Shown piece after piece: positions 9,808 through 64,000 of a DNA stretch of 64,000 nt; positions within the stretch are counted from its first letter, which is position 1, and each line of letters opens with the position of its first letter. The stretch covers positions 187,266 through 251,265 of the IMG/VR virus record IMGVR_UViG_3300027963_000035; one strand, given 5' to 3'. The translations under genes and the position numbers were made by a program. The notes beneath the pieces are model-generated. The model had not been told where the DNA came from. It saw only the letters and a program-made list of their open reading frames with translations, and searched no databases.

Positions 9808-10422
9808 TTATATTTCAAGACTACAAGTTTCTAATTCATTTAAGCATCTAAAATTAGTTCCATTGACTGTCATTTGCCAACTCTTATGGTAGTGTCCAAA
9901 ATACCAACTTTTTGGTTGGTAAATATTAAACAATTCTTGCAAGAAATATCCTGTTTGATTTTGATACATCTGAGTATGTGGATCCAACAAATAAGGAGAA
10001 ATAGTTTCCGGACAATCATGCGTGAGCATAATATCCGGCTTGATGCTTCTATAAAGTTCCCTAGCCTTCATGAATTGTTCAACAGACACTTGTTCTTCTG
10101 ACCACCAATCAATTCCGATAGTTCTGTATTGTTTATCAATACTATATGCTCCACGGTAGTAGAAAAAATCTATTCCGTTGAAATTAACCATGTATCCATA
10201 GTCGCCAAGATAATGTGGAATATTAATTATTTTTGAATAGTTATCGTGATTACCGCCGACAATAACAAACTTTTTTGGATCGACATTATCTAATGTAGAA
10301 AAATCGAAACCCAGGTCGCCAATTTGGACTATGTATTCATGACGATCTTTCTCACGAATTATTTCGTGCATACGTCTATATTTGCCGTGAACATCACCCA
10401 AAATAGTAATAATTTTTTTCAT
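9808..10422 (-). CDS. Calcineurin-like metallophosphoesterase
   Basis: GDVHG, GDLG, GNHD, THD and GHYH motifs. Confidence 0.9.
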   Translation of the reverse strand: MKKIITILGDVHGKYRRMHEIIREKDRHEYIVQIGDLGFDFSTLDNVDPKKFVIVGGNHDNYSKIINIPHYLGDYGYMVNFNGIDFFYYRGAYSIDKQYRTIGIDWWSEEQVSVEQFMKARELYRSIKPDIMLTHDCPETISPYLLDPHTQMYQNQTGYFLQELFNIYQPKSWYFGHYHKSWQMTVNGTNFRCLNELETCSLEI

Positions 10423-10434
10423 AAAAAATAAAAT

Positions 10435-10495
10435 AACCCTCCGCACGAACCTATTAGGGTCACGAACCTATTAGAGTGTCGTGCGGAGGGTTTTT
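10435..10495. terminator. Bidirectional terminator-like hairpin with an internal 14-nt direct repeat
   Basis: AACCCTCCGCACGA...TCGTGCGGAGGGTT, with CACGAACCTATTAG present twice; A/T runs on both flanks. Confidence 0.6.
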
Positions 10496-17030: not shown

Positions 17031-17471
17031 TTATTTTAGGTGTTCAATAATTTTTTCTGTAATCGGAACGGTCAATCCTATGTTTTCATCGGTTTGAAAA
17101 AAACTTCCTTCAATACAAGCATCATCAAAATCATCTAATATTGCAAACTTTTGTGCTTGATTGTTATTTAGCCATGCCTGTATTTCTTCGTTTCTCCTGA
17201 CCCATCCACCTTCTGTCCATCCTTCTGACCTTTCAATTACGGGAGTGCAATCAAAAAGTTCAAGTCCATGTTGACTGAGTGCTTGAATAACAATATTTTT
17301 ATCTTTTTCTTGAACTCTCCAAGTTGAAGAAAGAACAATTTTTGCTTCTGTTTCTCTGACAATTCTTGCGACAAGAGCCACAAGAATGTTATCAATAAAA
17401 TCAAAACCAAACTTTTTTATTGTTTTTGGAGTGTTTAGAACCCCATCAACATCTAAGAAAATGATTTTCAT
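17031..17471 (-). CDS. HAD-family phosphatase (HAD_SAK_2-like)
   Basis: IIFLDVDGVLN, IVLSSTWR, R-x-x-EI, FAILDD. Confidence 0.85.
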   Translation of the reverse strand: MKIIFLDVDGVLNTPKTIKKFGFDFIDNILVALVARIVRETEAKIVLSSTWRVQEKDKNIVIQALSQHGLELFDCTPVIERSEGWTEGGWVRRNEEIQAWLNNNQAQKFAILDDFDDACIEGSFFQTDENIGLTVPITEKIIEHLK

Positions 17472-21497: not shown

Positions 21498-21500
21498 ACG

Positions 21501-21764
21501 TCCGAAGGGTGGGATTCGAACCCACAGTCTACAAATTCAAGTTTGTGTGATTTTCACCACTCCTTGGACTTTGTCTTCACCATATCTTACGATTTAGGTG
21601 GTCGCCGTTAAGTCTCTACACGTTCCCTTACGGGCTTCGCTCGGCATTGCCATATGCTCACGCATTTAGGTTTCACCGAATTTGACGACATCCCATACGA
21701 AGTTTCCAATCGTATGGCACGAAAATTCATGAGTTTGTTGCATTAACCGTTTTGCTACCTTCGG
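21501..21764 (-). tRNA. tRNA-CAT (probably Ile2) interrupted by a group I intron
   Basis: Spliced cloverleaf: acceptor CCGAAGG/CCTTCGG plus A, anticodon arm ACAAA-CTCAT^AA-TTTGT, T-arm GTGGG-TTCGAAT-CCCAC. Adjacent to tilS. Confidence 0.85.
21538..21728 (-). ncRNA. Group I intron (IC3, Azoarcus-like), 191 nt
   Basis: U before the 5' splice site; terminal G; IGS GTG; core AAATTCGGTGAAA, AATGCCGAGC, GTAGAGACT, AAGACAAAGTCC; CCTAA/TATGG tetraloop-receptor sequences. Confidence 0.9.
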
Positions 21765-21780
21765 AAATTAACCAACTGTG

Positions 21781-22434
21781 CTAGTCTAGAATTACCGTCT
21801 TATTCTTCAAGTTTTTTTCAATTCTCCTTGAACAATATTTTTCTAGACTTAACTTTTGTTTTTTCATTTCTGGAATGATTGTTTGACGAATCCAATTTCT
21901 TCTGCTTCCTTTGACAACCTTATTGGTTTCGTCCTCCACAGTATAGCAATTCCATTTATTCCTGTCAACGTACTCTTGAAAATCTTTTTTCTTACTTAAT
22001 AGAAAAGGATGGATGATCTTGAATCCATCGAACTCGCTAATTAATTCAAAAGGATTGTGATTGGGTTGTCCACGAAAACAATTAATTAAATAGCTTTCCA
22101 CATAATCATTGAGATGATGAGCAGTGATTACATAACCTTCGTAATCCACAACCTCTTTATAAAAATTTAAGCGGGCCTCCCTGCAATCTTTTTCTGTTTT
22201 TAAATTTTGGCCCTTACCCACAATGCCCTTTAATCCTAATTTACCACAAAGTTCATGGAACTTATTTTCCATGGCATGGTTCTGTTCTCTTAGATTATGA
22301 TTAAAGTGCAATGGAGTAATGTTGTATCCCTTGCTTCTCAACCAAAATAAAGAAGATACGCTATCGACACCCATGCTTACGGCAACATAGCAATGAGTTT
22401 CTTTTGAAACAATTTCTTTAATGATCTTGATCAA
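21781..22434 (-). CDS. tilS: tRNA(Ile)-lysidine synthetase, minimal PP-loop form
   Basis: VAVSMGVDS, HFNHNLR, TAHHLNDYVES, HPFL, EDETN, RNWIR. Confidence 0.85.
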   Translation of the reverse strand: MIKIIKEIVSKETHCYVAVSMGVDSVSSLFWLRSKGYNITPLHFNHNLREQNHAMENKFHELCGKLGLKGIVGKGQNLKTEKDCREARLNFYKEVVDYEGYVITAHHLNDYVESYLINCFRGQPNHNPFELISEFDGFKIIHPFLLSKKKDFQEYVDRNKWNCYTVEDETNKVVKGSRRNWIRQTIIPEMKKQKLSLEKYCSRRIEKNLKNKTVILD

Positions 22435-26164: not shown

Positions 26165-26451
26165 TGCCAAAGGCGGGGGTCGAACCCGCACAGGATGTTA
26201 TCCCGAGGGATTTTCTTACCACTATAGTTTTCACTACCCTTGCGGTTTGTAGTCTGGACTTTACCTTCACCATAACTTCTCAGTTTTAGGTGCTGCCCGT
26301 CAAGTCTCTACACCTTCCTGATTTCTCAGGCTTGGCTCGGTATTAGCAGTTAAGCCTTCACCGAATTTGAGCAGTTCTGCTCTAAAAGTTTCCTTTTAGG
26401 CACTCAATTTAATATCAAGTCCCTTGCGTCTGCCTATTTCGCCACTTTGGC
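26165..26451 (-). tRNA. tRNA-Leu(TAA) interrupted by a group I intron after U34
   Basis: Acceptor GCCAAAG/CTTTGGC plus A; AGGGA-CTT^AAAA-TCCCT; long variable arm. Confidence 0.9.
26215..26416 (-). ncRNA. Group I intron, 202 nt
   Basis: IGS TT-GAG; core AAATTCGGTGAA, AATACCGAGC, GTAGAGACT, AAGGTAAAGTCC; terminal G. Confidence 0.9.
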
Positions 26452-26603: not shown

Positions 26604-27923
26604 TCATTTTACACCTTTAAGGTAATTTTTATATTCTTCTAAGAAAATCTTTTCTTCATTCTTTGGATTAGAATTAGAGTGGCCTTTTGCTTGAACAACT
26701 TTGTTATTTTTAATTTCAATTGTTACTAGTGGTTTTTGAATTTCAGAGTTTAACCTTAAAAACAAAATAGTAGAATTCTTATTAGCGATATCTTCGTCAT
26801 AGCTTGCAACGCAATGATTTAGCTTTATTCCTTCTTGAATTAAATCCTCGTGTTTAACTGGGGCTATTACGCTATACCTTTCATTTTTATATTCATATTT
26901 TTTAAAAGTTTTGCAAACTTTAGAGAACCTATTTTTAAAAGTTCTACTTTTTAAGACCTCATAATTTTTGCTAGTTATATCATGAAGTGTTTTAAGATAT
27001 CTTGGATACTTATCAAAATCATTTTTCATTTGAACGTTCATTTTTGCATAATCATGAAGAATTGATAATGCATCTTCAATATCTTCAATTCCCTGATTAG
27101 GCAACCCCCTGCAAATATAATCTGTTAATTTAAATTTGTCATAACCCATCTTTATTAAGATATTAAAATATTCATCGTGCATATCTGGAAACCGATTATA
27201 GTTGTCAATTGCATACTTTATCACATCTACATTTTTAACCTCGCACCACCGTTCCAGAGTTGCATAATCGACTAATCTCATATAATCAGCCGGAACACTA
27301 CTATATTCAGCAACCATTGTATCTAATTTTTCAATATAGTAATCCAAGCTATACTTTTTAAAATCACTTATAGTTTTAATATTATAATCAAAATAGATTT
27401 GTGCGAATTCTAGATGGTGGAATTTTTCTTTATTTTTTTGTAAAAAGTCCCACTTTGCAAATTTTTCAAAATCCCCCATAATCACAGGATTATTTAAAAT
27501 ACTAAAAAGATCGCTCCTATCAGGTACATAGTAATCTTCACGGCTGGTGATAATGAAGAATAACTGAATCCATTCTTCTTTGCACAATTTATAAATATCT
27601 TTATCTCTCGCCAATCCAGAAAGATTGCCAGATGCAAATTTTATACATGACTTAGGATTTTTAATAAGAGTATTTGTCTCTGCGTCATAGAACTTATTAT
27701 CAATCAGAGAATATTTAACATTTGTTTTGTTGCTAAAATTAAAAATTAAACTTTTCTTGTCCTCAGACTCACTAACACTTTTCAAGTATTGATAGTGCTT
27801 AATTTTTGATTCTTTTTTCTTCTTTTCAGCTAAATGTATTTGGTTTATAAGTTCTTTGGTTGTGAAACCATTAACTTGTATAGTTGCTGTTTTCTTGCCA
27901 TTATTAATTTTGATTGTTCTCAT
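26604..27923 (-). CDS. PcfJ-domain protein
   Basis: DYAKM...KYPRYLKTLHD...DLIQEGIKLNHCVASY...LFLR...VTIEI...QAKGHSN. The real start is probably the ATG at 27923, because the longer ORF call extends into the array. Confidence 0.85.
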   Translation of the reverse strand: MRTIKINNGKKTATIQVNGFTTKELINQIHLAEKKKKESKIKHYQYLKSVSESEDKKSLIFNFSNKTNVKYSLIDNKFYDAETNTLIKNPKSCIKFASGNLSGLARDKDIYKLCKEEWIQLFFIITSREDYYVPDRSDLFSILNNPVIMGDFEKFAKWDFLQKNKEKFHHLEFAQIYFDYNIKTISDFKKYSLDYYIEKLDTMVAEYSSVPADYMRLVDYATLERWCEVKNVDVIKYAIDNYNRFPDMHDEYFNILIKMGYDKFKLTDYICRGLPNQGIEDIEDALSILHDYAKMNVQMKNDFDKYPRYLKTLHDITSKNYEVLKSRTFKNRFSKVCKTFKKYEYKNERYSVIAPVKHEDLIQEGIKLNHCVASYDEDIANKNSTILFLRLNSEIQKPLVTIEIKNNKVVQAKGHSNSNPKNEEKIFLEEYKNYLKGVK

Positions 27924-27935
27924 TTTACTTGTTAT

Positions 27936-28625
27936 GGACACCCTGTTCGTTATTAAAATCAGAGGGTTTTGGTTCACTCTCGCACATTGTTAAAATCGCA
28001 CAGCTAGGTTCACTAAACCATCATGTTAAATCTTCTTATTTGGTTCACTCTCGCACATTGTTAAAATACCGGCACTAGGTTCACTCTTCACGCATGTAAA
28101 ATCAGATTTTATGGTTCACTCGACAACTATGTTAAAATCGAAGGGCTAGGTTCACTCTTCATCTATGTTAAAATCAAGCAGGTTGGTTCACTCAACTACC
28201 TTGTTAAAATATCGAATGATGGTTCACTCACCAAATTTGTTAAAATTCCCGACTGTGGTTCACTCCAGAGGTCTGTTTAAATCCGGACATATGGTTCACT
28301 CGAATGCGGTGTTAAAATCGCCGTTTGTGATTCACTCACTATACATGTAAAATCTCTCACATTGGTTCACTTAACTACCTTGTTGAAATCGTCGGGCTTG
28401 GTTCGCTCCGGCAGTATGTAAAAATCCAGTCTGATGACTCACTCAACGTTCATGTTAAAATCGTTAATAATGGTTCACTTCTCGTCCTTGTTAAAATCAA
28501 GCAGGTTGGTTCACTCCGGCAAAATGAAAAAATCTGGGCTTCTGGTTCACTCATGGACGCATGTTAAAATCAAGGAAACTGGTTCACTCTTGACTTTTGT
28601 TAAAATCTCAGCCACTGGTTCACTC
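27936..28625 (-). repeat. TIGR-like dual-repeat guide-RNA array (~18 full 36-nt units plus one degenerate terminal unit)
   Basis: The + strand unit is GGTTCACTC-N8-TGTTAAAATC-N9. There are 19 GGTTCACTC-type boxes from 27971 to 28625 with a 35-37 nt period, and the variable segments are mostly unique. Confidence 0.9.
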
Positions 28626-33380: not shown

Positions 33381-33399
33381 TGTTTTTTTCTTTGGCCAG

Positions 33400-33499
33400 G
33401 GCGAATGGGTGGAATCGAACCACCACAAGGGCATTTGTTTGCCTACTCTGCTGTCGCAGTTCGGAACTTCCCTCACGCTACCACTACGCTACATTCACC
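33400..33499 (-). tRNA. tRNA-His-like RNA or pseudogene with aberrant, expanded anticodon arm
   Basis: G-1:C73 plus GTGAATG/CATTCGC; D-arm GCGT-AGTGGTA-GCGT; T-arm GGTGG-TTCGATT-CCACC. The anticodon loop is replaced by ~38 nt with no GTG. Confidence 0.6.
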
Positions 33500-37895: not shown

Positions 37896-39691
37896 TATAA
37901 TTCCAACATTCTACTTTTTTAATTTGATTTGATTTATCAAACCATTTATCTCCTTCAATGTATTTGTTTGCTTCTTCTACATTAGAAAGTTTAAGAATAA
38001 CTCTATAAGAACGTAGTCCAATTTTTTCAAATGTATCCAAATAACGCCAAAATAACCACCCCTTTTTCTTGACTTGATACCATTCTTTTCCGTTACCATC
38101 AACAAATTTACAAATTTTGTATTTAGTCACTTTTCTACCCAGGGTCTTGCGAGTAATAAGCCGGTGTTCGATCATCTTGCAGAAAATCGTATTGCGATGC
38201 AATTACAGCAAAATATATCCCTAATGAGCCGTTTTTTGATCTTCTTCCTTCACAACATCCATAAATATTTTTTTCTAAATCATTGTAAAAATTATACCTC
38301 AGTGATTGATCTACAAAATATTTCATTTCTTCTATAATGTTTGATTTATGATGATCCATCTTACAAAATGGAATGTAAATATTTAATTTTTTTGCTCTTT
38401 CTAGCATTTCAGACTTAGAAATAACACACAAATTTTTTCCTTTGTATATTGTCTGGTGTTCTTTAGTTCTTAAATATGCACCGTATGAATTTTTAAAAAC
38501 TAAAATTCCAGCCATTGTTGGCAACAAAGATTTAATAAGACTTCTTCTGTTCATTTCTTTTCTCCTTGGTTGTTTTTTTCCATCTCAGAGTTTACTTCAC
38601 CCTTCAGCATAACTAAATCCAATCTAATATTTTTTACATCTTCACTTATTTTGTATGAAATAAAAGTCATTATGAATGCCAACATCATAATGATAATCGT
38701 GATAAATAAAATAATTGCTTTAAGTAATTTATCGTTTTCGTTCATTTCTTGTCTCCGTATATAAATTTCCACTCTGATAAGTCTGTATCAACACCAGCAG
38801 CATCCCTAATACCATAAATGGTCTTGGGATCATGGTCGTATTTATGATTACGAATTTCTTTGGTTATTCTGAAGTTCATAATAGGTTGTGTTCTTTAAGA
38901 GTTTGATATAAATTTTTTACTTCTTTTTCGTCCAGCCTTATTTCGCTGGGGTCAGTATTGTTATAACTAAATACTCTGACCAAGTAAGGTTTATTTTTCA
39001 AAAACTCATTATAATGAATCTCAACAATATCATATTCAAGATTCAGAGTTCTTACTAGAGTTTGCATTTAAAACTCTTAGCGATATGCCGCTCATTGAAC
39101 ATTGTATATGTCAAATGGGCCAAAGAATCCTCTTTCTATGATTTGATTGACAAACAATTTAATATCCTCAATAGAAGGGTTTCCTGTTTCATTTTCAACT
39201 TCTATTGTTATTAGAGTTTTCATAATTTTTCTTATATTAAAACCTAATCACTTTATAATCATTACCAACTTTACAGTTTATACTTCCATGCAAACCTGGG
39301 AGGATGATATTAGCAATGATTAACTCTGCCCCAATTACTTTATTCTTACTGTAGACTTCTTGGGCTATTTTAACATCTTCTAAAGAGGCAGGACGAGATC
39401 CTCTTTCATTAAAGTCTTTGATAACCTTAGTTCTATTCTCATCATTAGAACTTGAGCAATCGTCTAAGATTTTTTCTTCTTCTTCTGAAAACTTTGGAGA
39501 AAGTCTTTCAATCCATTTATCATCTATCAAACAAAGGCATCGTGTCATTTTCCCTCCTTGGAAAAATGTTAGTGGGTGCTAATAGCATACCAGAAATTTT
39601 TGTTTCGTCAATAGAAAGTTACATCATGATTGAATTTATTTATAAAATTATGGTTCAATGCATATATATAAATATATTAAAGGTTCAAGTC

Positions 39692-40258
39692 ATGAAAGTA
39701 AAAGATAAAATATTAGAATTAAGGGCATTGGGATATTCATATAAAAAAATCCAAGATGAGATCAAGTGCTCAAAAGGAACAATATCGTATCATTGTGGTG
39801 AAGGTCAAAAAGAAAAATACGCCAAAAGACGTAAATCAAACAGATCTAAACAGCATCCTTTGATTCGCAAGATTGAAAATTTTATTTATGATAAATACTA
39901 CAAACCTGTTCCGAAGAATAGGCATATTCATACATTGCACAAAAACCTGAAGATAAGGATAGAAGGATTCTCTAGAGTTAACAAGGAGTATGCTGGCATG
40001 GAATTTACAATTAAAGATTTTTTAGATAAGGTTGGAGATAATCCAACATGCTCATTAACTGGAAAACCAATTGATTTAATGAAACCTAGAACATATCAAT
40101 TGGATCATATAATCCCAAGATCTAAGGGGGGAGAAAATACTCTAAATAACTGTCAGCTTGTTCTCAAGGAAGTCAATTTAGCAAAACATACTTTAAGCTC
40201 AGAAGAGTTTGTTAAATTATGCAGAGAAGTTGTTGATTATCACGATAGAAAAAACTAA
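39692..40258 (+). CDS. Free-standing HNH endonuclease with N-terminal HTH
   Basis: ILELRALGYSYKKIQ...CSKGTISYH; CSLTG...QLDHIIPRSKGGENTLNNCQLV...VNLAK. Confidence 0.9.
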   Translation: MKVKDKILELRALGYSYKKIQDEIKCSKGTISYHCGEGQKEKYAKRRKSNRSKQHPLIRKIENFIYDKYYKPVPKNRHIHTLHKNLKIRIEGFSRVNKEYAGMEFTIKDFLDKVGDNPTCSLTGKPIDLMKPRTYQLDHIIPRSKGGENTLNNCQLVLKEVNLAKHTLSSEEFVKLCREVVDYHDRKN

Positions 40259-40297
40259 TCAAAGTTTGTAGCTCTTTATATTCAAACCAGCTTGTAG

Positions 40298-40438
40298 CTC
40301 CGTGACTTGGATTTGAACCAAGAACCATTCGATTAATCCACTGTTTGGGCATTGAACCCAACATAAATTGCCAGCTTTTTTGAGCTTCAATTCAGTGGCT
40401 TTTTACAGTCGAACACTCTACCGTTGAGTTATCACGGA
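40298..40438 (-). tRNA. tRNA-Asn(GTT) with a 69-nt structured insertion in the anticodon
   Basis: Acceptor TCCGTGA/TCACGGA plus G73; TTCGA-CTGT[insert 40336-40404]TAA-TCGAA; T-arm CTTGG-TTCAAAT-CCAAG. Confidence 0.75.
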
Positions 40439-40503
40439 ATAATTAGCACAAAATATTAATAGTAAATACTTTGCACTTTTCTAAACAAAACAAAAAAACA
40501 AAA

Positions 40504-40780
40504 TGACCCAGCCAAGGATCGAACTTGGAACCTACAGCTTAGCGGTACCACTATAGTTTTCACTACCATTACTGTTTGTGGTCTGGACTTTATCTTCACC
40601 ATTGTCTTTCAACTTTAGGTGTCGCCTGTTAAGTCTCTACACCTTCCTAATTGCTTAGGCTTGGCTCGGTATTAGCAGTTAAGCCTTCACCGAATTTAAG
40701 CGATTCTACATTAAAGATTTCTCTCTAAGCACTCCTATTTCACGAAGGCTGTTGCTCTTATCCAATTGAGCTACTGGGCC
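40504..40780 (-). tRNA. tRNA-Arg(TCT) interrupted by a group I intron after U34
   Basis: Acceptor GGCCCAG/CTGGGTC plus A; ACAGC-CTT^CTAA-GCTGT; A20-type D-loop. Confidence 0.85.
40543..40744 (-). ncRNA. Group I intron, 202 nt, close relative of the tRNA-Leu intron
   Basis: IGS TAG-GAG; terminal G; shares long identical blocks with 26215-26416, e.g. AAATTCGGTGAAGGCTTAACTGCTAATACCGAGCCAAGCCT and GGTAGTGAAAACTATAGTGGTA. Confidence 0.9.
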
Positions 40781-41603
40781 AAAAATCAACCTAAATCAAA
40801 CCAAAATCAACCTTTAAACCTTTATCCCCTTTTTTACAGTTTTAGGACTGGTTTTTTACTTGCATTTAAAATACAATTGGCAAATTGTACCAGTTCTTCA
40901 ACTGAATTTCCACAGGGGTTTGCATTTGATGAACCAACGACTTCTTCATTATCATTATAGTAAACTTCTTGAATAATGAAATAGTCTTGCATTTCACCAA
41001 TATTTACTACTCGGTAATCAGAGTTCACATTAACCTCCTTGATCTGCTGTTTCCTTGTATTTATTTTTCATTTCATCCGTGACTTGAAACTTTTCCAACT
41101 TCTCAAGAAAACCTAATTTTTCTTCGTTGGTTAATGGCTGATCAATTTTATTTTTACCAAGGTCGGTGCTATAGTATGGCGTTAATGGCTTTGCGATTTC
41201 AAAGCAATTGAAAATAACTTCTGGCAAGTCCTTTGGATTCTTAACTAGCCTTTCAAGATTATTCTTGATCTTGAAAAGAGCAGAACTAAGATATGCCTTG
41301 TGATCTAGTTGATTGATATAAATTTCTTTATTTGCTTCAAATAGGCTATTCAACTTGAGAATAGTCTCTTTGATTTCCTTATCGTTATCAATGTAGGACA
41401 TTTTTTGTTTTCTTTAAAATATTAATTTCGTCGGAGATTCTTCTAAATGCTTCTTTTACACTCTTGAAAAGCAGAACCTTATCTTCTGTTTTGCTATAAA
41501 GTTCGTATTCTTCATCTTTTTTTTTAATGATGAAGCCGTTATTGGTTGCGAACTTACTCAAGTCCTCAGAATTTAATTCTCTCATATTTTTTTATAATAA
41601 AAA

Positions 41604-41704
41604 ACCCCCTTGCTCGGAGTCTCGGCATATCTGGTTGTGCAGGAGAACCGTGATATGCTACGTTGACCGTGCGGGTTGAACACGGGAGACACGAGCAAGG
41701 GGGT
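41604..41704 (-). ncRNA. Candidate structured RNA (three-way junction, 13-bp closing stem)
   Basis: Read on +: ACCCCCTTGCTCG/CGAGCAAGGGGGT, GTCTC/GAGAC, GCATATC/GATATGC, CCGTG/CACGG. A T-run follows on the minus strand. Confidence 0.55.
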
Positions 41705-41718
41705 GGCGGGACAAGCAG

Positions 41719-42099
41719 TTACCGTACCGAAACGGAAGTACGGCTACGACTTCTCTTGATTACATTCCCATTGAGTCGCTTGCGACTAGTCTCAACGGTA
41801 TCCGTCGACTCTTTAACCTGCTGGCAGTTCTGGCAGGTTACGTTCTCGGTATGAGTGCGGGAACGGCTGAAAGCCCTTTCACGCTTGCAGCAACTATCAC
41901 AGTTGTTGATGCAACCATCATTACAACTATTGCAACTGTTGCAGCAATTAGCGATTACAACTGGCGTAGCAGTTGTAGAGGCAATGCTATCAGTCCTGAG
42001 AACCGAAACTGATGTATCGGTGCTATCAATACTTGTCTGGCCGGCATACGATCCAGCACAAACCACTAAACAAGAAACAAAACTAAGAAACTTAATCAT
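41719..42099 (-). CDS. Secreted Cys-rich protein
   Basis: Signal peptide MIKFLSFVSCLVVCAGSYAG; CCNSCNSCNDGCINNCDSCC. Confidence 0.6.
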   Translation of the reverse strand: MIKFLSFVSCLVVCAGSYAGQTSIDSTDTSVSVLRTDSIASTTATPVVIANCCNSCNSCNDGCINNCDSCCKRERAFSRSRTHTENVTCQNCQQVKESTDTVETSRKRLNGNVIKRSRSRTSVSVR

Positions 42100-42210
42100 A
42101 TCTACTCCTTTGGTTAAAAATCGTCCTCGAACAGTGAGCATTGTAGCAAAAAGAGAATCCGGGTCAAGAGAAAATTCTGGATTTTTTTGAATTAAAAGAT
42201 AGATAATATT

Positions 42211-42582
42211 ATGCTAGATCTTATTTTGGACAAAATAAATAAAAAATACCCATTCGCTAATGTTTCTGCATTTGAAGCAAAACATAACATCGAATTGGAG
42301 ACCATCAGAATACCAGAGGAAAAACAAAACTCTGGAGTTGGATCAGATATAATCAGAATGTTGCAGAGTTATGCAAAAGAAGTTGATAAGCCTATTGTGA
42401 TCAGACCAGAGGCAGATAAAGGCAAGAAAGAAGCTCTAAATAGATTCTACAAAAAATTAGGATTTGTAAAGAATAGTGGTCGTAATATGGATTATACTCT
42501 CAGTAGCCCAATGGCATCCACCATGTATTGGAGAGAGAGTTTTAAGAACTGGCTATTTAATATCGAAAATATAAGAGACTGA
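42211..42582 (+). CDS. GNAT-family acetyltransferase
   Basis: QNSGVGS motif A and LNRFYKKLGF motif B. Confidence 0.75.
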   Translation: MLDLILDKINKKYPFANVSAFEAKHNIELETIRIPEEKQNSGVGSDIIRMLQSYAKEVDKPIVIRPEADKGKKEALNRFYKKLGFVKNSGRNMDYTLSSPMASTMYWRESFKNWLFNIENIRD

Positions 42583-46984: not shown

Positions 46985-47614
46985 TTAAAACCTATACTTC
47001 CTTGAAGGATGACGGAATTTTATTTGCCAACTATTATTGCTTTTTTGACCAGCACAATCCTTTAGGACGCTATCTCTCTTTTTTAACACAAAGCCTTCAT
47101 CAACATCTTTATCTTTGATATTGTTGAAGAGATCTAGGATACCTTCTTCGATATTTTTTGCAAGCCAAAATCTTGGCTCAATTTCAAAGTGGCTGTATTC
47201 TTCTTTTTTATTTTCAGGATGGAAAATATCTCTCAGAAGATTCTGCCGTTCAGTAAAAGTCTTTCCATAAAGTTCTTCGGAGTTATGGACGATAATATCA
47301 AAGATATAAACAGTGTCCTTGATGCTGGTTGTTTTGCTGTGAATTACTTCACCAACAAGAACGTGCCACTTATCGGCCGGAAGATACTTTGTGAAACAAT
47401 CCCTAAAATAGTTGGAAAATTCCCACTGTTTATGGTTATCATTGTGGCGAGTCATTGCAATAAAATCTTTGGGATGATTGATTGCAAAGATGCTACAAGT
47501 GCCATTCTTCTTGTATTGCCCAGTATACCCCGACTTTTCAAACACCGGGATTCTATCCGGCGGCAGGGCATTTTCCGGGCGAGGCGGATAAAGATATTTA
47601 AAACTATCGTACAT
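46985..47614 (-). CDS. Ligase/capping-type nucleotidyltransferase (adenylation domain only)
   Basis: QYKKNG (KxNG), GEVI, YIFDI, EGFVLK, WQIKFR; no OB domain. Confidence 0.75.
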   Translation of the reverse strand: MYDSFKYLYPPRPENALPPDRIPVFEKSGYTGQYKKNGTCSIFAINHPKDFIAMTRHNDNHKQWEFSNYFRDCFTKYLPADKWHVLVGEVIHSKTTSIKDTVYIFDIIVHNSEELYGKTFTERQNLLRDIFHPENKKEEYSHFEIEPRFWLAKNIEEGILDLFNNIKDKDVDEGFVLKKRDSVLKDCAGQKSNNSWQIKFRHPSRKYRF

Positions 47615-51464: not shown

Positions 51465-52790
51465 TCACTCTTTGAAAAGCAGACCACGATCCGCTAACAG
51501 GCTGCAAATCTTTTTCATATCTGCTTTTTTGGGCTCATTATTTCCACGAGCCTTGAACTGAACAATGTTCTTTCTTGCAACTTCAACATTATAAATCATT
51601 TCATTGGTATTCTTGTCCATGACTGCAAATACAACTGTCTTGGCCTTCAAAACATTGTCAGCATAACCGTGGATGCAGTTCTGCATAATATTAGTCCACT
51701 CTTTGAGATCGTAATTTGTATTGGGCATCAACAATCTCATATCGTCAACTTCATGTTCATTGAGACTCCAAAAGTCAGGGAAATTTTCCTTGATTTTAAG
51801 ATCGAATTCGGGATCCTGCAACTTGGCAGTTTCCTTGTTAAGATAGTTAAGGATTTCATCTGCGTTGTTTACAAGACCAACCTGTTGAACGTCCAGGTTA
51901 ATGGTTTCCTTCAACCTTGGGTATTGATCCCCGATTTCAATGAATGCGGCCTGACGAGTTGAACTCTTGAGAAAATTAAGGATTTTCTTTTGGTTGTAAG
52001 ATCCGTCTTTTTCTCTTGTGTAATCTTTAATAAAACTATTCAAACCGCTATAGCCGGCAATATCTCCGAAGTCAACGTTAAAGATATTCTTTTCAATAAC
52101 TTCATAAAGATTGTCTGCATGAAGAGCATCCTTGAAGGCTTCTCCAAAAAAGAAAAACCTATAGTCCAAGAAATTATTATCAGGCTTGAAAATATTCTGC
52201 AGTGCAAGTTTCTTGAGTTTCTTAGCACTAAATCCGAAAACACTTTCAAGAACCTCATCAAGATTTTTACGATTGCTAAATGCTGTGAAATATTTCTCGG
52301 GACAATTAGCAATATTATAAAAATGAATATGAGAATCAGATTGATTCTTTTTATTCAAAACACTATTTGTCTGATCTGAATTGTTGTTTGAATAAATCAG
52401 ATAGAACCCATCCTCGGTAACAGGATAGGCACTGTTCTCAATAAGAGCCTGAATCATTTCAGAGGCAGCATGATCATCGACCCTATTCTTTAGATTATAC
52501 CAGAAGTTGAAAAGACTTTTGAATACCCAACTTGTTTCTTTGAAAAGAAGAAACTGATTGCCCAATATGCTCGGGATAGGATCCTTGCCATAATGGACAA
52601 GTCCATCAATAACCGTGAAACCATCTTTATTGAGATTCTTGGTAGGATTAATAGCATCCGCAACCAATTCAAACTTACCTTCATTCAGGTATGTCTTAAT
52701 CTTATCATACCTATAGTCATTATTGCTAATGGTATAAGTTTGACCCGAAGTATTTATAACAATTGAATTGGAAAGAAGATAGTATTTCAT
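51465..52790 (-). CDS. rIIB-like N-terminus fused to a C-terminal PcfJ domain
   Basis: N-terminal ...SLFNFWYNL...YPVTEDG (rIIB-like); C-terminal DLKEWTNIMQNCIHGY...IVQFKARGNNEP. Downstream of rIIA. Confidence 0.6.
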   Translation of the reverse strand: MKYYLLSNSIVINTSGQTYTISNNDYRYDKIKTYLNEGKFELVADAINPTKNLNKDGFTVIDGLVHYGKDPIPSILGNQFLLFKETSWVFKSLFNFWYNLKNRVDDHAASEMIQALIENSAYPVTEDGFYLIYSNNNSDQTNSVLNKKNQSDSHIHFYNIANCPEKYFTAFSNRKNLDEVLESVFGFSAKKLKKLALQNIFKPDNNFLDYRFFFFGEAFKDALHADNLYEVIEKNIFNVDFGDIAGYSGLNSFIKDYTREKDGSYNQKKILNFLKSSTRQAAFIEIGDQYPRLKETINLDVQQVGLVNNADEILNYLNKETAKLQDPEFDLKIKENFPDFWSLNEHEVDDMRLLMPNTNYDLKEWTNIMQNCIHGYADNVLKAKTVVFAVMDKNTNEMIYNVEVARKNIVQFKARGNNEPKKADMKKICSLLADRGLLFKE

Positions 52791-58156: not shown

Positions 58157-59242
58157 TCATTCTTCTTCTGCTTTAAACTTTAATTGTGTTTGCTGGCACT
58201 CTTCTTTTGAGATGTCATTCCTAACACCCAAATAAATAGGTTGATATAGAGAACCAGATTGCTTTCTGGCGTAGAGGTATTTTACCTCTACGATTTCACC
58301 CACATTCGGTACATCGAAATTAACAGGAATGGTTACATTTCCGGCCTTCACAAGTTTCTTTCCCTTGTAAAGACCAATAGCAGCACTACGCTTTTTATTA
58401 ATTTCGGTAACCACACAACTACACGTACTATAAAACTTGTACTTCAAATAGTTTCCGCCACTTGCAGGGCGACCAATATTATAGTGAGCATCAATATGCT
58501 TGAAGACAACTCCTTCTTTGTTTTCTTTAAGCAAACTGTCATAAACCTCACGCTTGTCTTTCTTTTCAAGATAAAGAGGAGTATGAATAATATTCTCAGA
58601 TTCAATGTACTTAAACAAAGTTTTGAGATATTTCATCCTCTCAATTAAACTTTTCTTCCTAAGACATTCACTGCGATATTCGAGAATATCAAAAACGTGC
58701 AAAGTCTCACCAATCAGTTCACCATCAACTAAGAAATTATCATCAAACTTAGTGACAACATTCCAAATCACAGTAGGAATGCTGATCCTTTTGCCCTTAC
58801 GATTAATTCCGTGGGGAGACTGATCCTTTTCCTTACCCAACATAAACCGGACACCATCAAGTTTATGTTGGAGAGCCCAATTATCATCATTAATAAGCTT
58901 TTCAGCTTCATCTTGACTAATTGGATTTAAGAGAACGCACTGTATCTCATTGGGAGTATCAGGCAGATCATCACTCACAACAGGAATTTCAGAGGGATTG
59001 GCATTTTCAACAAACCTATATCCCTTGCTCGTTTTTTCCTTTACAAGATTATTAAAAATAGTCTTGGCATCTTCAAGAGTAGTTGGACTTTGGGTTTTAC
59101 TGCCTGTTTTCAAGGCACTTCCCCTGCGTCCATAACTAAAATTCACAACATATCCACTGCTGATATCTTCAATGGTGGTGTGATAAACTTTGTCGCTGGC
59201 GCCTTCTTTATAATACAGATTGGCAGATTCGATCACAGACAT
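58157..59242 (-). CDS. WGR domain + ATP-dependent DNA ligase
   Basis: SDKVY...YGRRG...KEKTSKGY (WGR); QHKLDG, DGEL, FDIL, EGVVFK, KYKF; OB tail YQPIYLGVRND. Confidence 0.85.
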   Translation of the reverse strand: MSVIESANLYYKEGASDKVYHTTIEDISSGYVVNFSYGRRGSALKTGSKTQSPTTLEDAKTIFNNLVKEKTSKGYRFVENANPSEIPVVSDDLPDTPNEIQCVLLNPISQDEAEKLINDDNWALQHKLDGVRFMLGKEKDQSPHGINRKGKRISIPTVIWNVVTKFDDNFLVDGELIGETLHVFDILEYRSECLRKKSLIERMKYLKTLFKYIESENIIHTPLYLEKKDKREVYDSLLKENKEGVVFKHIDAHYNIGRPASGGNYLKYKFYSTCSCVVTEINKKRSAAIGLYKGKKLVKAGNVTIPVNFDVPNVGEIVEVKYLYARKQSGSLYQPIYLGVRNDISKEECQQTQLKFKAEEE

Positions 59243-59736
59243 TATGATTCCTTTATTATTCAATTCCATTCGTGAGAACATTTAAGAAATAAATTAGAAA
59301 AATTACCTTCACTACCATATGTTTTACCAAATTCAACCCATTCTTTAAGAATAGCAGTATCTTCGGAAAATCTTTCTATTTCCGAATAATAGCCTGTTTC
59401 ATATGGAAGAAACTTGCTGCAGTGAGTCATTGTTATTGCTTCTATCTTTTTAACAAAAGATCCATCTTTTTCATAAAGACTCATCCAAGATTCAGCAACA
59501 AAAAGATACTCAACAAGTTGTTTTTCAATTATCTGATATCTGATAAAGTCGGCAAATTTTTCTTTATCATCAGGCGAATTAAAATCTGCTGAATATACAT
59601 TGATTTCAGAATCTGTATATTCAGCGATAAGAGCCGGGGATAAATACCCGTCTTTTGCGAAATTAATTCCTGCGCAATTTTGAAATACTTTTATTTTATC
59701 ACTAAGCATAAAATCTCGATTTGATTTATTAAAAGA

Positions 59737-61088: not shown

Positions 61089-64000
61089 TTATAGATAATA
61101 AATTCCTGGGGAACCTATATTGCCAATCCCTGCTGACCGGTATGCACCTAATACTCCATTTGAATTCAATGTCCCAGCAGCATTCGAAATCAAAGTTCCA
61201 TTAGAGTCATACCGCCAATAGAAAGTAACCCCAGTTGTGGCTACTGCAAAATTAGATAGCGGCAATGGCGGCACTCTTGTAACTTCTGATCGACTTGAAT
61301 TGTATATTACAACTCCGTCCCCATTGGCCCCGAAACTTACTCCACTACCAGAATAAGTGGCAATTTTTACTCCACTTCCTAAACTCCAAAAACTCTTGAA
61401 TGCTGGAACCGCCGTATTCGGGGTTGCAGTTTCTATACAAACAACTGATTCTCCTGCGGATATAGTTGTCCATCCGCCATAAGGAACAAGTGATACTGCA
61501 CTGGAGTATAGGAATGAATCGTCGTCCATCTTCCAACCAGTAATATCAACAGGCAAACCTCCAAAATTTGTCAACTCGAACCAGTCTCCAGTTCCACCCG
61601 CTCCACTTGAACTCATGACTTCCGTTATTCGAATTATTCCAGGACCCAGTGTTGATGTAGGTGTTGATGTAGGTGTTGATGTAGGTGTTGATGTTGGGTA
61701 TGGTGGCAAAGTTGTCGGCACATCTTGATTATCTTGATTAGTTTGTGTGGGAGTCGATGTTTGTGTGGGAGTCGATGTTTGTGTGGGAGTTGATGTTTGT
61801 GTGGGAGTTGATGTGGGTGCAGGTGGTAAATAAAAGGGACGAGAATATGCTGTGTGTAATTTTACATATGCACCACCACCTTCAGCTGCAGTATAGGGGA
61901 ATATAAAAAACTGTAATCCTTCCGAGTAATCGGAAGTTAGGCTTCTTAGGTCGATTGTTACTGTGCATTCACTTATTGCGCCATACATAATACAAGAACC
62001 TAAATCTTTGGAAGGATCCGTTAAAGGATAAGATCCATAATAAACAAGATACGAAACATTGGAGATATTATCATTTCCAATATTGGATATAACACAATCC
62101 CAAGATAAAGTAACAAAATTACCATCTTGAACCGCCGTAAAGTTATTTGGTAAGTTTGGACACTTTAAAAACTCTGTTATCTCGCCTTGGCGACTTTGTA
62201 AGAAAGTGATTATTAAATTTTTAGAATTTAAAATAGACTGTTGTGTTGTTCCTATTGGATTTTTCTTATCACTTAATAAACTTGCTATTTTTTTGTCATA
62301 CACGTAATTAACATAACTGTAAATATCATTAAATACTGTGTCATCCTCTTCAAATGTTGATGTTTGTATCCAATTATGAAAGCTTAGCAACTCAGATATA
62401 AAAATATCTAAAGTTTCTCTATGAGAAAGACATTGATCAAAGAAATAAGAATTATTAAGTGTGTATTGAAAGCCCATAGTCTCAAAAATTAAACCTGATC
62501 CATCGAAGTACGTGTCTGCTCCCCAAGGTAATAATCTAAATTTTCCACTTGAGTCGCTATGATAAACGCTATTATTACCAAAAGAAACATAACCATCATT
62601 GTGGCCGCAATAAAGCTCTATAACACAATACTTCATCAGCTGTTCGATATGTGCACAAGTTAACATATTATTATACCAACTTAAACCTTGTGGATTCTTG
62701 ATCGAGTCTTCCACATACGAGAATGATTGAACTCTATTCAAAAAGTTTTCAAGATCACCTAGCCCAGAAACACTAGGATCAGCATAATCAACATCATAGG
62801 CAATAGAATTTGCCACAAATTCATATGGATTTGTAGTTATATTTACTTCATATAAATGTTGTGTATTATTTTGTCCAAATAATCTTTCCAGCGTAGAAAC
62901 ATTTCTATATTCTTCTATCGCAAAGTACTCTCCGAAATCAATGGAAAATTCCAAATCAGAACTTATTGATGGAAGAGAAAATTCCGTTCCGCCGATTGTT
63001 GAAGAAACTTTAAAGGTTGTAGAAGTTAAACTGTTTGATATAGCGTAAAAGACTTGATTTTCTGAGACTCCACTTAATCCTATAAATTTAACACCCATTC
63101 CTTCTATAAGGTAATGCTCTATATTTGTGGTAACAATGTTACCGTCTATGCTGGTGATTTTTAATGTGGGATCATTGATAAAAAGCCTGCAAAAGTTTGT
63201 TTTAGGTGCGGGCATACCATACTCATTAAATATTTTGTATATGATATGTTGTTTTATTTTAGACGCATCTTGCAAAGAATTATTTAATGCCAAATATTTT
63301 ACAGAATTTATTCCGTTTATAAAATTATTTGACTTTATCTTTAATGGTATTTTTCTATTGTATGGCGTTAAAGAACCATATCCTTTTCCTCTTGCACTCA
63401 CAGTAGATTTTGGGAATGCCGTTCCAGAATAAGAAACATTCAACTCAACAGAAACATAAGTTTGCTTCCAAGTCTCAGGAGGATTTTGAACTATGGTTGC
63501 CGGAAGAAATCTTTCTACATCATAAACATTATTGGTGGAAATTACCTTATTCCACTCTGAACGGGCAGAACTGTTTATTCTTAAATTAAATTCTAAATTA
63601 TTACTATTAAAAGGGTTAGGAGATAATGTGGGCGTAGGTGTTAGTGTAGGTGTACTTGTTAGTGTTGGTGTACTTGTTGATGTTAGCGTAGGTGTTAGTG
63701 TAGGTGTTAGTGTAGGTGTTAGTGTAGGTGTTAGTGTAGGTGTACTTGTTGATGTAGGAGTTCTTGTTGATGTTAGCGTAGGTGTTAGTGTAGACGTACT
63801 TGTTGATGTAGGAGTTCTTGTTGATGTTAGCGTAGGTGTTAGTGTAGACGTACTTGTTGATGTAGGAGTTCTTGTTGATGTTAGCGTAGGTGTTAGTGTA
63901 GACGTACTTGTTGATGTAGGAGTTCTTGTTGATGTTAGCGTAGGTGTTAGTGTAGACGTACTTGTTGATGTAGGAGTTCTTGTTGATGTTAGCGTAGGTG
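61089..64000 (-). CDS. CotH-kinase-like + lamin-tail (LTD) domain protein with Thr/Pro/Ser linkers (5' end beyond window)
   Basis: LALNNSLQDASKIKQ...GMPAPKTNF...HNDGY...NN...LLPWGADTYF (CotH-like); IRITEVM...DWFELTN...VDITGWKMDD (LTD). The frame stays open upstream of 63443 into the T/P/S repeats. Confidence 0.75.
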   Translation of the reverse strand, partial: PTLTSTRTPTSTSTSTLTPTLTSTRTPTSTSTSTLTPTLTSTRTPTSTSTSTLTPTLTSTRTPTSTSTSTLTPTLTSTRTPTSTSTPTLTPTLTPTLTPTLTPTLTSTSTPTLTSTPTLTPTPTLSPNPFNSNNLEFNLRINSSARSEWNKVISTNNVYDVERFLPATIVQNPPETWKQTYVSVELNVSYSGTAFPKSTVSARGKGYGSLTPYNRKIPLKIKSNNFINGINSVKYLALNNSLQDASKIKQHIIYKIFNEYGMPAPKTNFCRLFINDPTLKITSIDGNIVTTNIEHYLIEGMGVKFIGLSGVSENQVFYAISNSLTSTTFKVSSTIGGTEFSLPSISSDLEFSIDFGEYFAIEEYRNVSTLERLFGQNNTQHLYEVNITTNPYEFVANSIAYDVDYADPSVSGLGDLENFLNRVQSFSYVEDSIKNPQGLSWYNNMLTCAHIEQLMKYCVIELYCGHNDGYVSFGNNSVYHSDSSGKFRLLPWGADTYFDGSGLIFETMGFQYTLNNSYFFDQCLSHRETLDIFISELLSFHNWIQTSTFEEDDTVFNDIYSYVNYVYDKKIASLLSDKKNPIGTTQQSILNSKNLIITFLQSRQGEITEFLKCPNLPNNFTAVQDGNFVTLSWDCVISNIGNDNISNVSYLVYYGSYPLTDPSKDLGSCIMYGAISECTVTIDLRSLTSDYSEGLQFFIFPYTAAEGGGAYVKLHTAYSRPFYLPPAPTSTPTQTSTPTQTSTPTQTSTPTQTNQDNQDVPTTLPPYPTSTPTSTPTSTPTSTLGPGIIRITEVMSSSGAGGTGDWFELTNFGGLPVDITGWKMDDDSFLYSSAVSLVPYGGWTTISAGESVVCIETATPNTAVPAFKSFWSLGSGVKIATYSGSGVSFGANGDGVVIYNSSRSEVTRVPPLPLSNFAVATTGVTFYWRYDSNGTLISNAAGTLNSNGVLGAYRSAGIGNIGSPGIYYL
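63631..64000 (-). repeat. 54-bp / 12-bp coding tandem repeats (TPTLTSTRTPTSTSTSTL)
   Basis: GTTAGCGTAGGTGTTAGTGTAGACGTACTTGTTGATGTAGGAGTTCTTGTTGAT repeated at least 4 times. Confidence 0.9.

Follow-up and report, generated by a model that had tools for sequence, protein, structure and literature searches.

An intron-like insert with a partly tRNA-like predicted fold interrupts the tRNA-Asn gene of a huge freshwater phage

Results

Genomic context of the interrupted tRNA-Asn gene

The region analyzed here (hereafter the window) is a stretch of 64,000 nucleotides corresponding to positions 187266-251265 of a 251-kb viral contig (IMG/VR record IMGVR_UViG_3300027963_000035), which is judged about 50% complete and has a G+C content of about 35%. 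The sequencing runs in which it occurs are freshwater metagenomes. Its tRNA-Tyr has a long variable arm, and its genes include a pilin-type leader and TilS-like and PcfJ-like proteins. It is therefore a huge phage of a bacterium.

On the minus strand, this phage carries a tRNA-Asn(GUU) gene that is split inside its anticodon, between U35 and U36, by a 69-nt insert (Table 1). The tRNA model of Rfam (RF00005) matches the whole gene at 53.8 bits, for a gathering score of 29, with a 70-nt insertion in the anticodon loop. ARAGORN calls a tRNA-Asn(gtt) with a 69-nt intron when introns are allowed but misses the gene without this option. The coordinates were checked base by base. The minimum-energy fold of the 141-nt RNA is a full cloverleaf bearing a Y-shaped insert (-40.8 kcal/mol, z = -3.7 against shuffles). 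Hence, the preliminary description of this locus, which reported a 69-nt structured insert with these stems, without group I core or terminal G, inside an otherwise intact tRNA-Asn, is confirmed.

Table 1. Features of the tRNA-Asn region and related genes (positions within the window; RNA letters on the tRNA-sense strand)
Coordinates	Strand	Feature	Supporting observations
40298-40438	-	tRNA-Asn(GUU) gene with its insert (141 nt)	Rfam tRNA, 53.8 bits; ARAGORN
40405-40438	-	5' exon: acceptor 5' strand, D arm, anticodon stem 5' strand, loop bases C32 U33 G34 U35	Rfam; ARAGORN
40336-40404	-	69-nt insert between U35 and U36 (64-69 nt in relatives)	One architecture in nine alleles; exactly absent at this point in alleles L255 and L256
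40399-40404	-	Single-stranded 5' leader of the insert, NNAAAG	Two variable bases, then AAAG (AAUG in one allele)
40393-40398	-	P1 closing stem, 5' strand CCACUG	Invariant in nine alleles
40338-40343	-	P1 closing stem, 3' strand CAGUGG	U-G wobble in one allele, U-U mismatch in another
40366-40392	-	Bent arm: P2a (AAUUG/CAAUU), unpaired A, P2b hairpin (AGCU-CAAAAA-AGCU), unpaired GG	GG invariant; compensatory changes in P2a and P2b; top and bottom pairs of P2a not kept
40345-40361	-	P3, T-arm mimic: 5-bp stem UUGGG/CCCAA closed by G-C, 7-nt loop UUCAAUG	Fits the T-loop pattern UUCAANN; UUCAA invariant and last two loop bases variable in nine alleles
40336-40337	-	3' tail of the insert	Invariant A, then a variable base (U, A or G) just before the 3' junction
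40298-40335	-	3' exon: U36 A37 A38, anticodon stem 3' strand, 5-nt variable loop, T arm, acceptor 3' strand, discriminator G73	Rfam; ARAGORN
39692-40258	+	Free-standing HNH endonuclease (188 aa, N-terminal helix-turn-helix-like region), convergent with the tRNA-Asn gene	Pfam HNH_4/HNH; PHROG HNH endonuclease
about 39594-40480		Cassette formed by the HNH gene and the tRNA-Asn gene	Shared at 88% with L009, in an unrelated context
40503-40781	-	tRNA-Arg(UCU) with a 202-nt group I intron (internal comparison)	Rfam Intron_gpI, 59.3 bits; ARAGORN
17031-17471	-	HAD phosphatase of the RNA-repair type, candidate end-healing enzyme	PF18143 HAD_SAK_2, E 2.3e-30
46985-47614	-	Weak match to the ATP-dependent DNA-ligase nucleotidyltransferase domain	No match to any RNA-ligase family

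Alleles with and without the insert

Pattern scans and searches through neighboring proteins recovered nine alleles carrying the insert, in different huge-phage contigs. Besides the window, these are L001 (323-kb contig, genome G001), L004 (187 kb, genome G002), where the gene is inverted relative to its neighbor, L009 (5.9-kb contig with unrelated flanks), L122, L128 (204 kb, genome G004), L169, L253 and L259 (490-kb contig). Most hits of the exact-pattern scans were chance matches or genuine tRNAs and were filtered out. In every allele, the insert lies in a tRNA-Asn gene at the same point, and only a junction between U35 and U36 restores the loop CUGUUAA in all nine. The alternative register proposed in the preliminary description, which would give a GTA (Tyr) anticodon, works only in the window, since relatives would give GUC or a pyrimidine at position 37; it is therefore refuted. 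A 34/35 junction was also rejected, since it would turn two alleles into GAU in an Asn-type body with G73.

Homologous alleles that lack the insert, L255 (which shares the upstream flank of the window) and L256, read CTGT|TAA exactly at this point. There is one copy per genome, always inside tRNA-Asn: no second copy was found in the 251-kb genome and none outside tRNA-Asn in eight viral scans, one metagenome scan and one scan of 185,579 prokaryote genomes. The insert is therefore not a repeated mobile DNA element such as a MITE or an IS200/IS605-derived palindromic element. Such presence or absence at one site of a conserved gene, with an element more similar than its flanks (see below), is as in mobile introns. 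This had not been seen in the preliminary description.

Conservation of the exons

Between the window and G001, the adjacent tRNA-Arg and its group I intron are 100% and 99.5% identical, whereas the two tRNA-Asn exons are only 71% and 53% identical and the insert between them is 90% identical. Despite this divergence, all 21 exon base pairs are kept in all nine alleles. In an analysis of seven of them, 16 exon pairs changed on both sides; 95% of the cells of the whole structure are paired against 83% in shuffles, and 0 of 500 shuffles reached the observed values, while slid controls fall to 31-46%. As this covariance-model-based count misaligned the T-arm mimic in alleles lacking the bulged A, those pairs were recounted from an explicit segmentation. 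Within a close clade whose members all carry the insert (L004, L122, L128, L169 and L259), acceptor pair 3-70 runs G-C, G-U, A-U, and the other changes fall at positions that vary freely in working tRNAs. The bases CUGU and UAA and the discriminator G73 never change, although the insert bases touching them do.

Furthermore, the interrupted gene is the only tRNA-Asn gene found in the available part of this genome and in G001, G002 and G004, which were searched whole. Asn makes up 7.3% of codons in the long ORFs of this genome and AAT is the most used codon. A dead gene or a mere scaffold would not show this pattern. However, the different exons around a similar insert could partly reflect recombination with intact insert-free alleles rather than selection after the insertion.

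Predicted structure of the insert

All nine inserts fit one plan: the 5' leader, the P1 5' strand, the P2a arm, an unpaired A, the P2b hairpin with a CAAAA or CAAAAA loop, the invariant GG, the P2a return strand, a 1-4-nt linker, P3, an optional A, the P1 3' strand, an A and one variable base. Compensatory changes support this three-way junction: UU/AA to CC/GG in L122 and U-A to C-G in L259 for P2a, U-A to C-G in L128, L169 and L259 for P2b, and U-A to C-G in L128 for P3. In addition, G-U wobbles occur in P1 (L169), P2a (L128) and P3 (L122 and L253). They pair only on the tRNA-sense strand, which indicates that selection acts on the RNA and not on the DNA. Some substitutions nevertheless break pairs, namely the outer pairs of P2a in L001 and L004, pair 2 of P3 in L001 and pair 5 of P1 in L259. 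A pseudoknot between AUUGAA and the hairpin loop UUCAAU was considered and rejected, since L122 has no AUUGAA and the last two loop bases vary.

P3 has the sequence features of a tRNA T arm (U-U-C-R-A-N-N loop with the last two bases free), and its stem covaries. A pattern built from P3 plus the P1 3' strand also retrieves the 3' ends of genuine tRNAs, from which the 3' part of the insert cannot be told apart by pattern. The insert can thus be viewed as a D-armless, tRNA-like three-way junction, in which the invariant GG might, as an inference only, play the part of G18-G19.

Searches for known introns, ribozymes and RNA families

No group I model (RF00028) nor any other family of Rfam 15, including known small self-cleaving ribozymes (hammerhead, twister, pistol, hatchet, HDV-like and others), matches the insert, even at E <= 10 on 91 nt, whereas the same search finds the neighboring introns at 59 bits. 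The last base of the insert is U in the window and U, A or G in relatives, never a conserved G. U35 is present, but no guide sequence with a conserved G exists. The insert shows no similarity above shuffles to four co-resident group I introns.

The bulge-helix-bulge motif cannot form either: the first insert bases (NNAAAG) and the first bases of the 3' exon (UAA) cannot pair, both partners of the central 4-bp helix being A-rich, and the fold shows an asymmetric internal loop instead. No tRNA-intron endonuclease (EndA, PF01974) was found in the 251 kb of this genome and no RtcB in genomes G000, G001 or G002, these searches covering phage genomes that are 50-88% complete and not their host.

RNA-repair genes and RNA data

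Genomes G001, G002 and G004 each encode a T4 Rnl1-type ligase (PF09511; phrog_562; match to the T4 structure 2c5u), in a region that lies beyond the end of the contig studied here. An AAA_33 kinase is encoded by G000 and G001 but not by G002; in the genome of the window it lies about 4.4 kb before the start of the window. No PNK3P was found, and no conserved protein gene, including an endonuclease gene, was found to travel with the insert. Of the two genes that the preliminary description named as a possible ligase and phosphatase, only the phosphatase at 17031 is of the RNA-repair type.

No public RNA run contained the tRNA-Asn gene. The two RNA libraries mapped on it cover only group I introns of other organisms, and four RNA libraries mapped on the region covered only the group I intron of the neighboring tRNA, with reads from other organisms. 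DNA runs of related strains gave almost no coverage of the tRNA-Asn gene, and one contig skips or replaces positions 39567-40494.

An HNH endonuclease family linked to tRNA-Asn genes

The cassette formed by the HNH gene and the tRNA-Asn gene recurs in L009. In G001, the HNH gene is reduced to a remnant, and at least four insert-bearing alleles have none nearby. The family has 262 homologs at E <= 1e-10. In all nine further homolog contexts retrieved, the gene abuts or overlaps the 3' end of a tRNA-Asn(GUU) gene, which is insert-bearing in L253 and L259, plain in L255, L256 and L260, or provided with a 13-14-nt extra variable arm in L247 and L248. With its HNH motif, its sporadic presence among relatives and its position, this link, which the preliminary description had not noted, indicates a putative homing-endonuclease family specific to tRNA-Asn genes, a specificity inferred from position alone. 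It may help the insert to spread and may explain the mosaic exons, but it is neither necessary nor sufficient for the insert.

Discussion

Our analysis indicates that a conserved, structured, intron-like element, present in some alleles and absent from others, lies in a phage tRNA-Asn gene that selection keeps intact. Literature searches for a tRNA-like or non-group-I phage tRNA intron found nothing relevant. The reading that best survives the comparative tests, and that we consider somewhat more likely than not, is that the insert is a mobile, RNA-level intron of a new class that is removed by proteins. It would therefore probably need a splicing route not yet described in bacteria or their viruses. 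In this view, P1 can stack on P3, and two cuts would fall at fixed distances from P1, 6 nt upstream and 2 nt downstream. If the G before P1 and the A after it are counted as a 7th, unpaired acceptor position, the variable last base corresponds to a discriminator and the 3' junction is exactly where RNase Z cuts a tRNA. By contrast, RNase P, if it acted, would cut at the 5' end of P1 and not at U35, leaving 5-6 extra bases for which this model does not account. The exon halves, held together by the tRNA body, would then be sealed by the Rnl1-type ligase of the lineage, with the HAD phosphatase and the small kinase healing the ends if needed. For instance, T4 Pnkp and Rnl1 are known to rejoin tRNAs cut in the anticodon loop (PMC3400036). 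However, Rnl1 and repair enzymes are common in large phages for other reasons, and their occurrence together with the insert is only weak support.

The anatomy of the element, its conservation and covariation, its exact presence or absence, the selection on the exons and the presence of the repair genes rest directly on the sequences. In contrast, the occurrence of splicing, the nuclease or nucleases involved, the end chemistry, the role of the ligase, the movement of the insert, the three-dimensional T-loop fold and the cleavage specificity of the HNH protein are inferred, without RNA evidence. That the insert is spliced is a strong inference. Hence, the interpretation given in the preliminary description, an unknown class of protein-spliced intron, is partly supported. 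The conserved structure in homologs, whose absence together with that of a spliced product was to have indicated a pseudogene, was found. Its other suggestion, an anticodon-shielded decoy, is not excluded but is disfavored, because the seven bases that would re-form the anticodon loop are invariant while the adjacent insert bases vary freely.

Several other explanations appear unlikely. The insert might be a new small ribozyme which, perhaps helped by the tRNA body, cuts itself out at both junctions, the ends being rejoined by reversal of the reaction or by a host or phage ligase. Indeed, the structure and several unpaired bases are conserved (AAAG, GG, the CAAAA loop and UUCAA), every tRNA intron described so far in bacteria is self-splicing (PMC3400036), and no endonuclease gene travels with the element. 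However, no known self-cleaving family matches, the variable bases flanking both junctions inside the insert are unusual for a catalytic site, and the T loop is a standard protein- and RNA-recognition motif rather than a known catalytic core. The insert could equally be a selfish DNA that is never removed, the dead or dying gene persisting through spreading of the cassette with the HNH endonuclease or through refreshing of the exons by recombination. The tight link of the HNH family with tRNA-Asn genes, the cassette found in an unrelated context, the mosaic exons (L009) and the lack of any observed spliced RNA are consistent with this reading, which is about as doubtful as the former one. On the other hand, there is no uncompensated stem mutation in 21 pairs across nine alleles although the inserts themselves differ by roughly 10% in the pairs compared, the anticodon-loop bases and G73 are invariant, this is the only tRNA-Asn gene found in the phage genomes searched while Asn supplies the most used codon, at least four insert-bearing alleles have no HNH gene nearby, and the covariation of the insert is of RNA type.

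Slightly less likely still, the 141-nt RNA may work unspliced, the tRNA body being a stable scaffold that displays the module, for example as a decoy for host anticodon nucleases or other tRNA-binding factors, or RNase P and RNase Z may release the tRNA-like module as the functional product. The module is more conserved than the surrounding exons and mimics the T arm and acceptor stem of a tRNA, and tRNA-Asn(GUU) belongs to the anticodon group that some anticodon nucleases attack. However, a scaffold needs neither the invariant CUGU and UAA nor the Asn discriminator G73, insert-free alleles exist as ordinary tRNA-Asn genes, and the phage would then have no tRNA-Asn at all. Two further origins are very unlikely. 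A deletion remnant of a group I intron, spliced with help in trans or not spliced, would agree with the about five group I introns that come and go in the tRNA anticodon loops of these genomes and with the 5' exon ending in U, but not with the lack of match, similarity and terminal G or with a fold conserved in its own right; furthermore, no intermediate-length relative was found in 10 collection scans. An archaeal or eukaryal-type intron would be of similar size, and non-canonical positions are known in archaea, but the central helix of the motif cannot form, the enzymes were not found in the phage sequences searched, and the long variable arm of the tRNA-Tyr marks a bacterial-type system.

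A more speculative extension, which we consider possible but unlikely, would be a third route of tRNA splicing. The intron being itself a miniature tRNA, it would be recognized and released by the tRNA end-maturation enzymes of the cell, RNase Z at the 3' junction and RNase P or a relative plus trimming at the 5' side, before a phage Rnl1-type ligase reseals the anticodon loop. This would be the first protein-dependent tRNA splicing in the bacterial world and would give a housekeeping role to phage RNA-repair enzymes.

The accepted view is that bacterial and phage tRNA introns are self-splicing group I introns and that protein-dependent tRNA splicing belongs to archaea and eukaryotes (PMC3400036). 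If the tRNA described here works, some uncharacterized splicing activity must exist in these phages or their hosts, a question that is directly testable with a 141-nt transcript and a handful of enzymes. These data also suggest that the Rnl1 ligase and end-healing enzymes common in large phages may carry out routine RNA processing as well as repairing damage from host defenses, and the tRNA-like shape of the intron points to how processing enzymes could be co-opted for splicing. Moreover, the link between an HNH family and tRNA-Asn genes in three forms (plain, extra-armed or insert-bearing) is a compact natural system for studying how homing endonucleases reshape an essential small gene. This case also shows that standard tRNA finders miss such genes.

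Comparison with known systems

Like group I introns of bacterial and phage tRNAs, for example those of cyanobacterial tRNA-Leu(UAA) and Azoarcus tRNA-Ile, the insert interrupts the anticodon loop of a bacterial-type tRNA after a 5' exon ending in U, varies in presence between homologous alleles and coexists with true group I introns in the same tRNA set. However, it is about a third of the minimal size, without P3-P9 core, terminal G or internal guide pairing with a U-G wobble, and its conserved core is instead a T-loop hairpin that can stack on a closing stem. As in archaeal and eukaryal protein-spliced introns (splicing endonuclease plus RtcB or Trl1 ligase), it is short, has no ORF and has variable bases at the junctions, so that the cut sites are probably set by structure or distance, and it would need an endonuclease plus a ligase. 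It differs by the lack of a bulge-helix-bulge motif, by its position (35/36, inside the anticodon, not 37/38), by the absence of EndA and RtcB homologs in what was searched, by its bacterial-type context and by being itself tRNA-like.

In phage T4, Pnkp and Rnl1 rejoin tRNA-Lys cut by PrrC, and the lineage studied here likewise encodes an Rnl1-family ligase, a HAD phosphatase of the RNA-repair type and a small P-loop kinase, for a putative break in an anticodon loop. In T4, however, the break is host-inflicted damage and nothing is removed, whereas here 69 nt would first have to be excised and the three activities, whose role is inferred, are separate genes. The tRNA-like signals cut by RNase P and RNase Z (plant mitochondrial t-elements and the MALAT1 mascRNA) share with the insert an acceptor-like stem stacked on a T arm, embedded in a longer transcript, and a predicted 3' cut one base after the stem-plus-one position, as for RNase Z. 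They mark transcript ends, however, nothing is rejoined and none lies inside a tRNA, and the 5' junction is here 5-6 nt upstream of where RNase P would cut. Finally, as in the collaborative homing of an ORF-less intron with a free-standing endonuclease in DNA polymerase genes of T3/T7-like phages, an ORF-less insert in a conserved gene lies beside a free-standing, variably present HNH gene, with mosaic exons around it. Here, however, the HNH family also abuts insert-free tRNA-Asn genes and several insert-bearing alleles have no HNH gene.

Other tRNA genes and neighboring genes

Four tRNA genes other than the tRNA-Asn gene carry group I introns of 191-202 nt in the anticodon loop. These introns come and go between relatives: the related genome G001 has an intronless tRNA-Leu(UAA) and the related genome G002 an intronless tRNA-Arg(UCU). 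One of the interrupted genes, located in the same genome (G000) but outside the window, has the anticodon UCA, which reads UGA. It could be an opal suppressor, which would hint at stop-codon recoding in this phage. Furthermore, the tRNA with a CAU anticodon lies directly beside a gene encoding a PP-loop ATPase of the TilS type. This tRNA may therefore be tRNA-Ile2, converted by lysidine, rather than tRNA-Met.

Positions of the features (window positions unless another sequence is named)
Feature	Sequence	Position	Strand
tRNA(CAU), group I intron	window	21500-21764	-
tRNA-Leu(UAA), group I intron	window	26165-26451	-
tRNA-Arg(UCU), group I intron	window	40503-40781	-
tRNA(UCA), group I intron	G000	144281-144554	-
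PP-loop ATPase, TilS type	window	21781-22434	-
Odd tRNA-like gene	window	33399-33498	-
tRNA-Arg(UCU)-like gene	L246 (LR756501.1)	207096-207213	-
tRNA-Asn(GUU), extra variable arm	L247	2568-2649	-
tRNA-Asn(GUU), extra variable arm	L248	2610-2693	-
TnpB/IS605 OrfB-type gene	L009	598-1725	+
TnpB/IS605 OrfB-type gene	L247	3584-4567	+
Minimal nucleotidyltransferase, ligase-like	window	46985-47614	-
Ligase-like protein with WGR domain	window	58157-59281	-
Calcineurin-type metallophosphoesterase	window	9808-10446	-
Homologue of the metallophosphoesterase (G002)	L004	2112-2711	+
Region compared with DNA run X5	window	38500-42500	
CotH kinase and lamin-tail protein	window	61089-63443	-
PcfJ-like protein	window	26604-27977	-
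PcfJ-like protein	window	51465-52790	-

In L247 and L248, two loci encoding close homologues of the HNH endonuclease, the adjacent tRNA-Asn(GUU) genes have an intact anticodon loop but a 13-14-nt extra variable arm with a GAAA-capped hairpin. This arm is unusual for tRNA-Asn and lies about 10 nt from the insert site of the other alleles. TnpB/IS605 OrfB-type genes lie within 1-2 kb of the tRNA-Asn-plus-HNH cassette in two unrelated contexts (L009 and L247). Moreover, in a DNA run (X5), the contig of a related strain jumps from 39566 to 40495, indicating that the HNH-plus-tRNA-Asn segment is missing or replaced in this strain.

Two genes of the window are ATP-dependent ligase-like: one encodes a minimal nucleotidyltransferase of 209 aa that has only a weak DNA-ligase match and the other a protein of 374 aa that has a WGR domain. 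The window also encodes a calcineurin-type metallophosphoesterase, whose homologue in G002 is located about 1 kb from the tRNA-Asn gene, a 784-aa protein with a CotH kinase domain and a lamin-tail domain and two PcfJ-like proteins.

A second odd tRNA-like gene (38 bits with the Rfam tRNA model) was found in the window. Its acceptor, D and T arms are good, but 38 nt stand where the model has 9 in the anticodon-loop region, and ARAGORN calls it Gly(tcc) with a 27-nt intron. Since it is 100% identical in G001, there is no covariation by which to judge it, and it does not resemble the Asn insert. In addition, the 735-kb phage LR756501 has a tRNA-Arg(UCU)-like gene of 118 nt, with an insert of about 45 nt containing an 8-bp hairpin near the anticodon stem. 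Short non-group-I inserts in tRNAs of huge phages may be more widespread.
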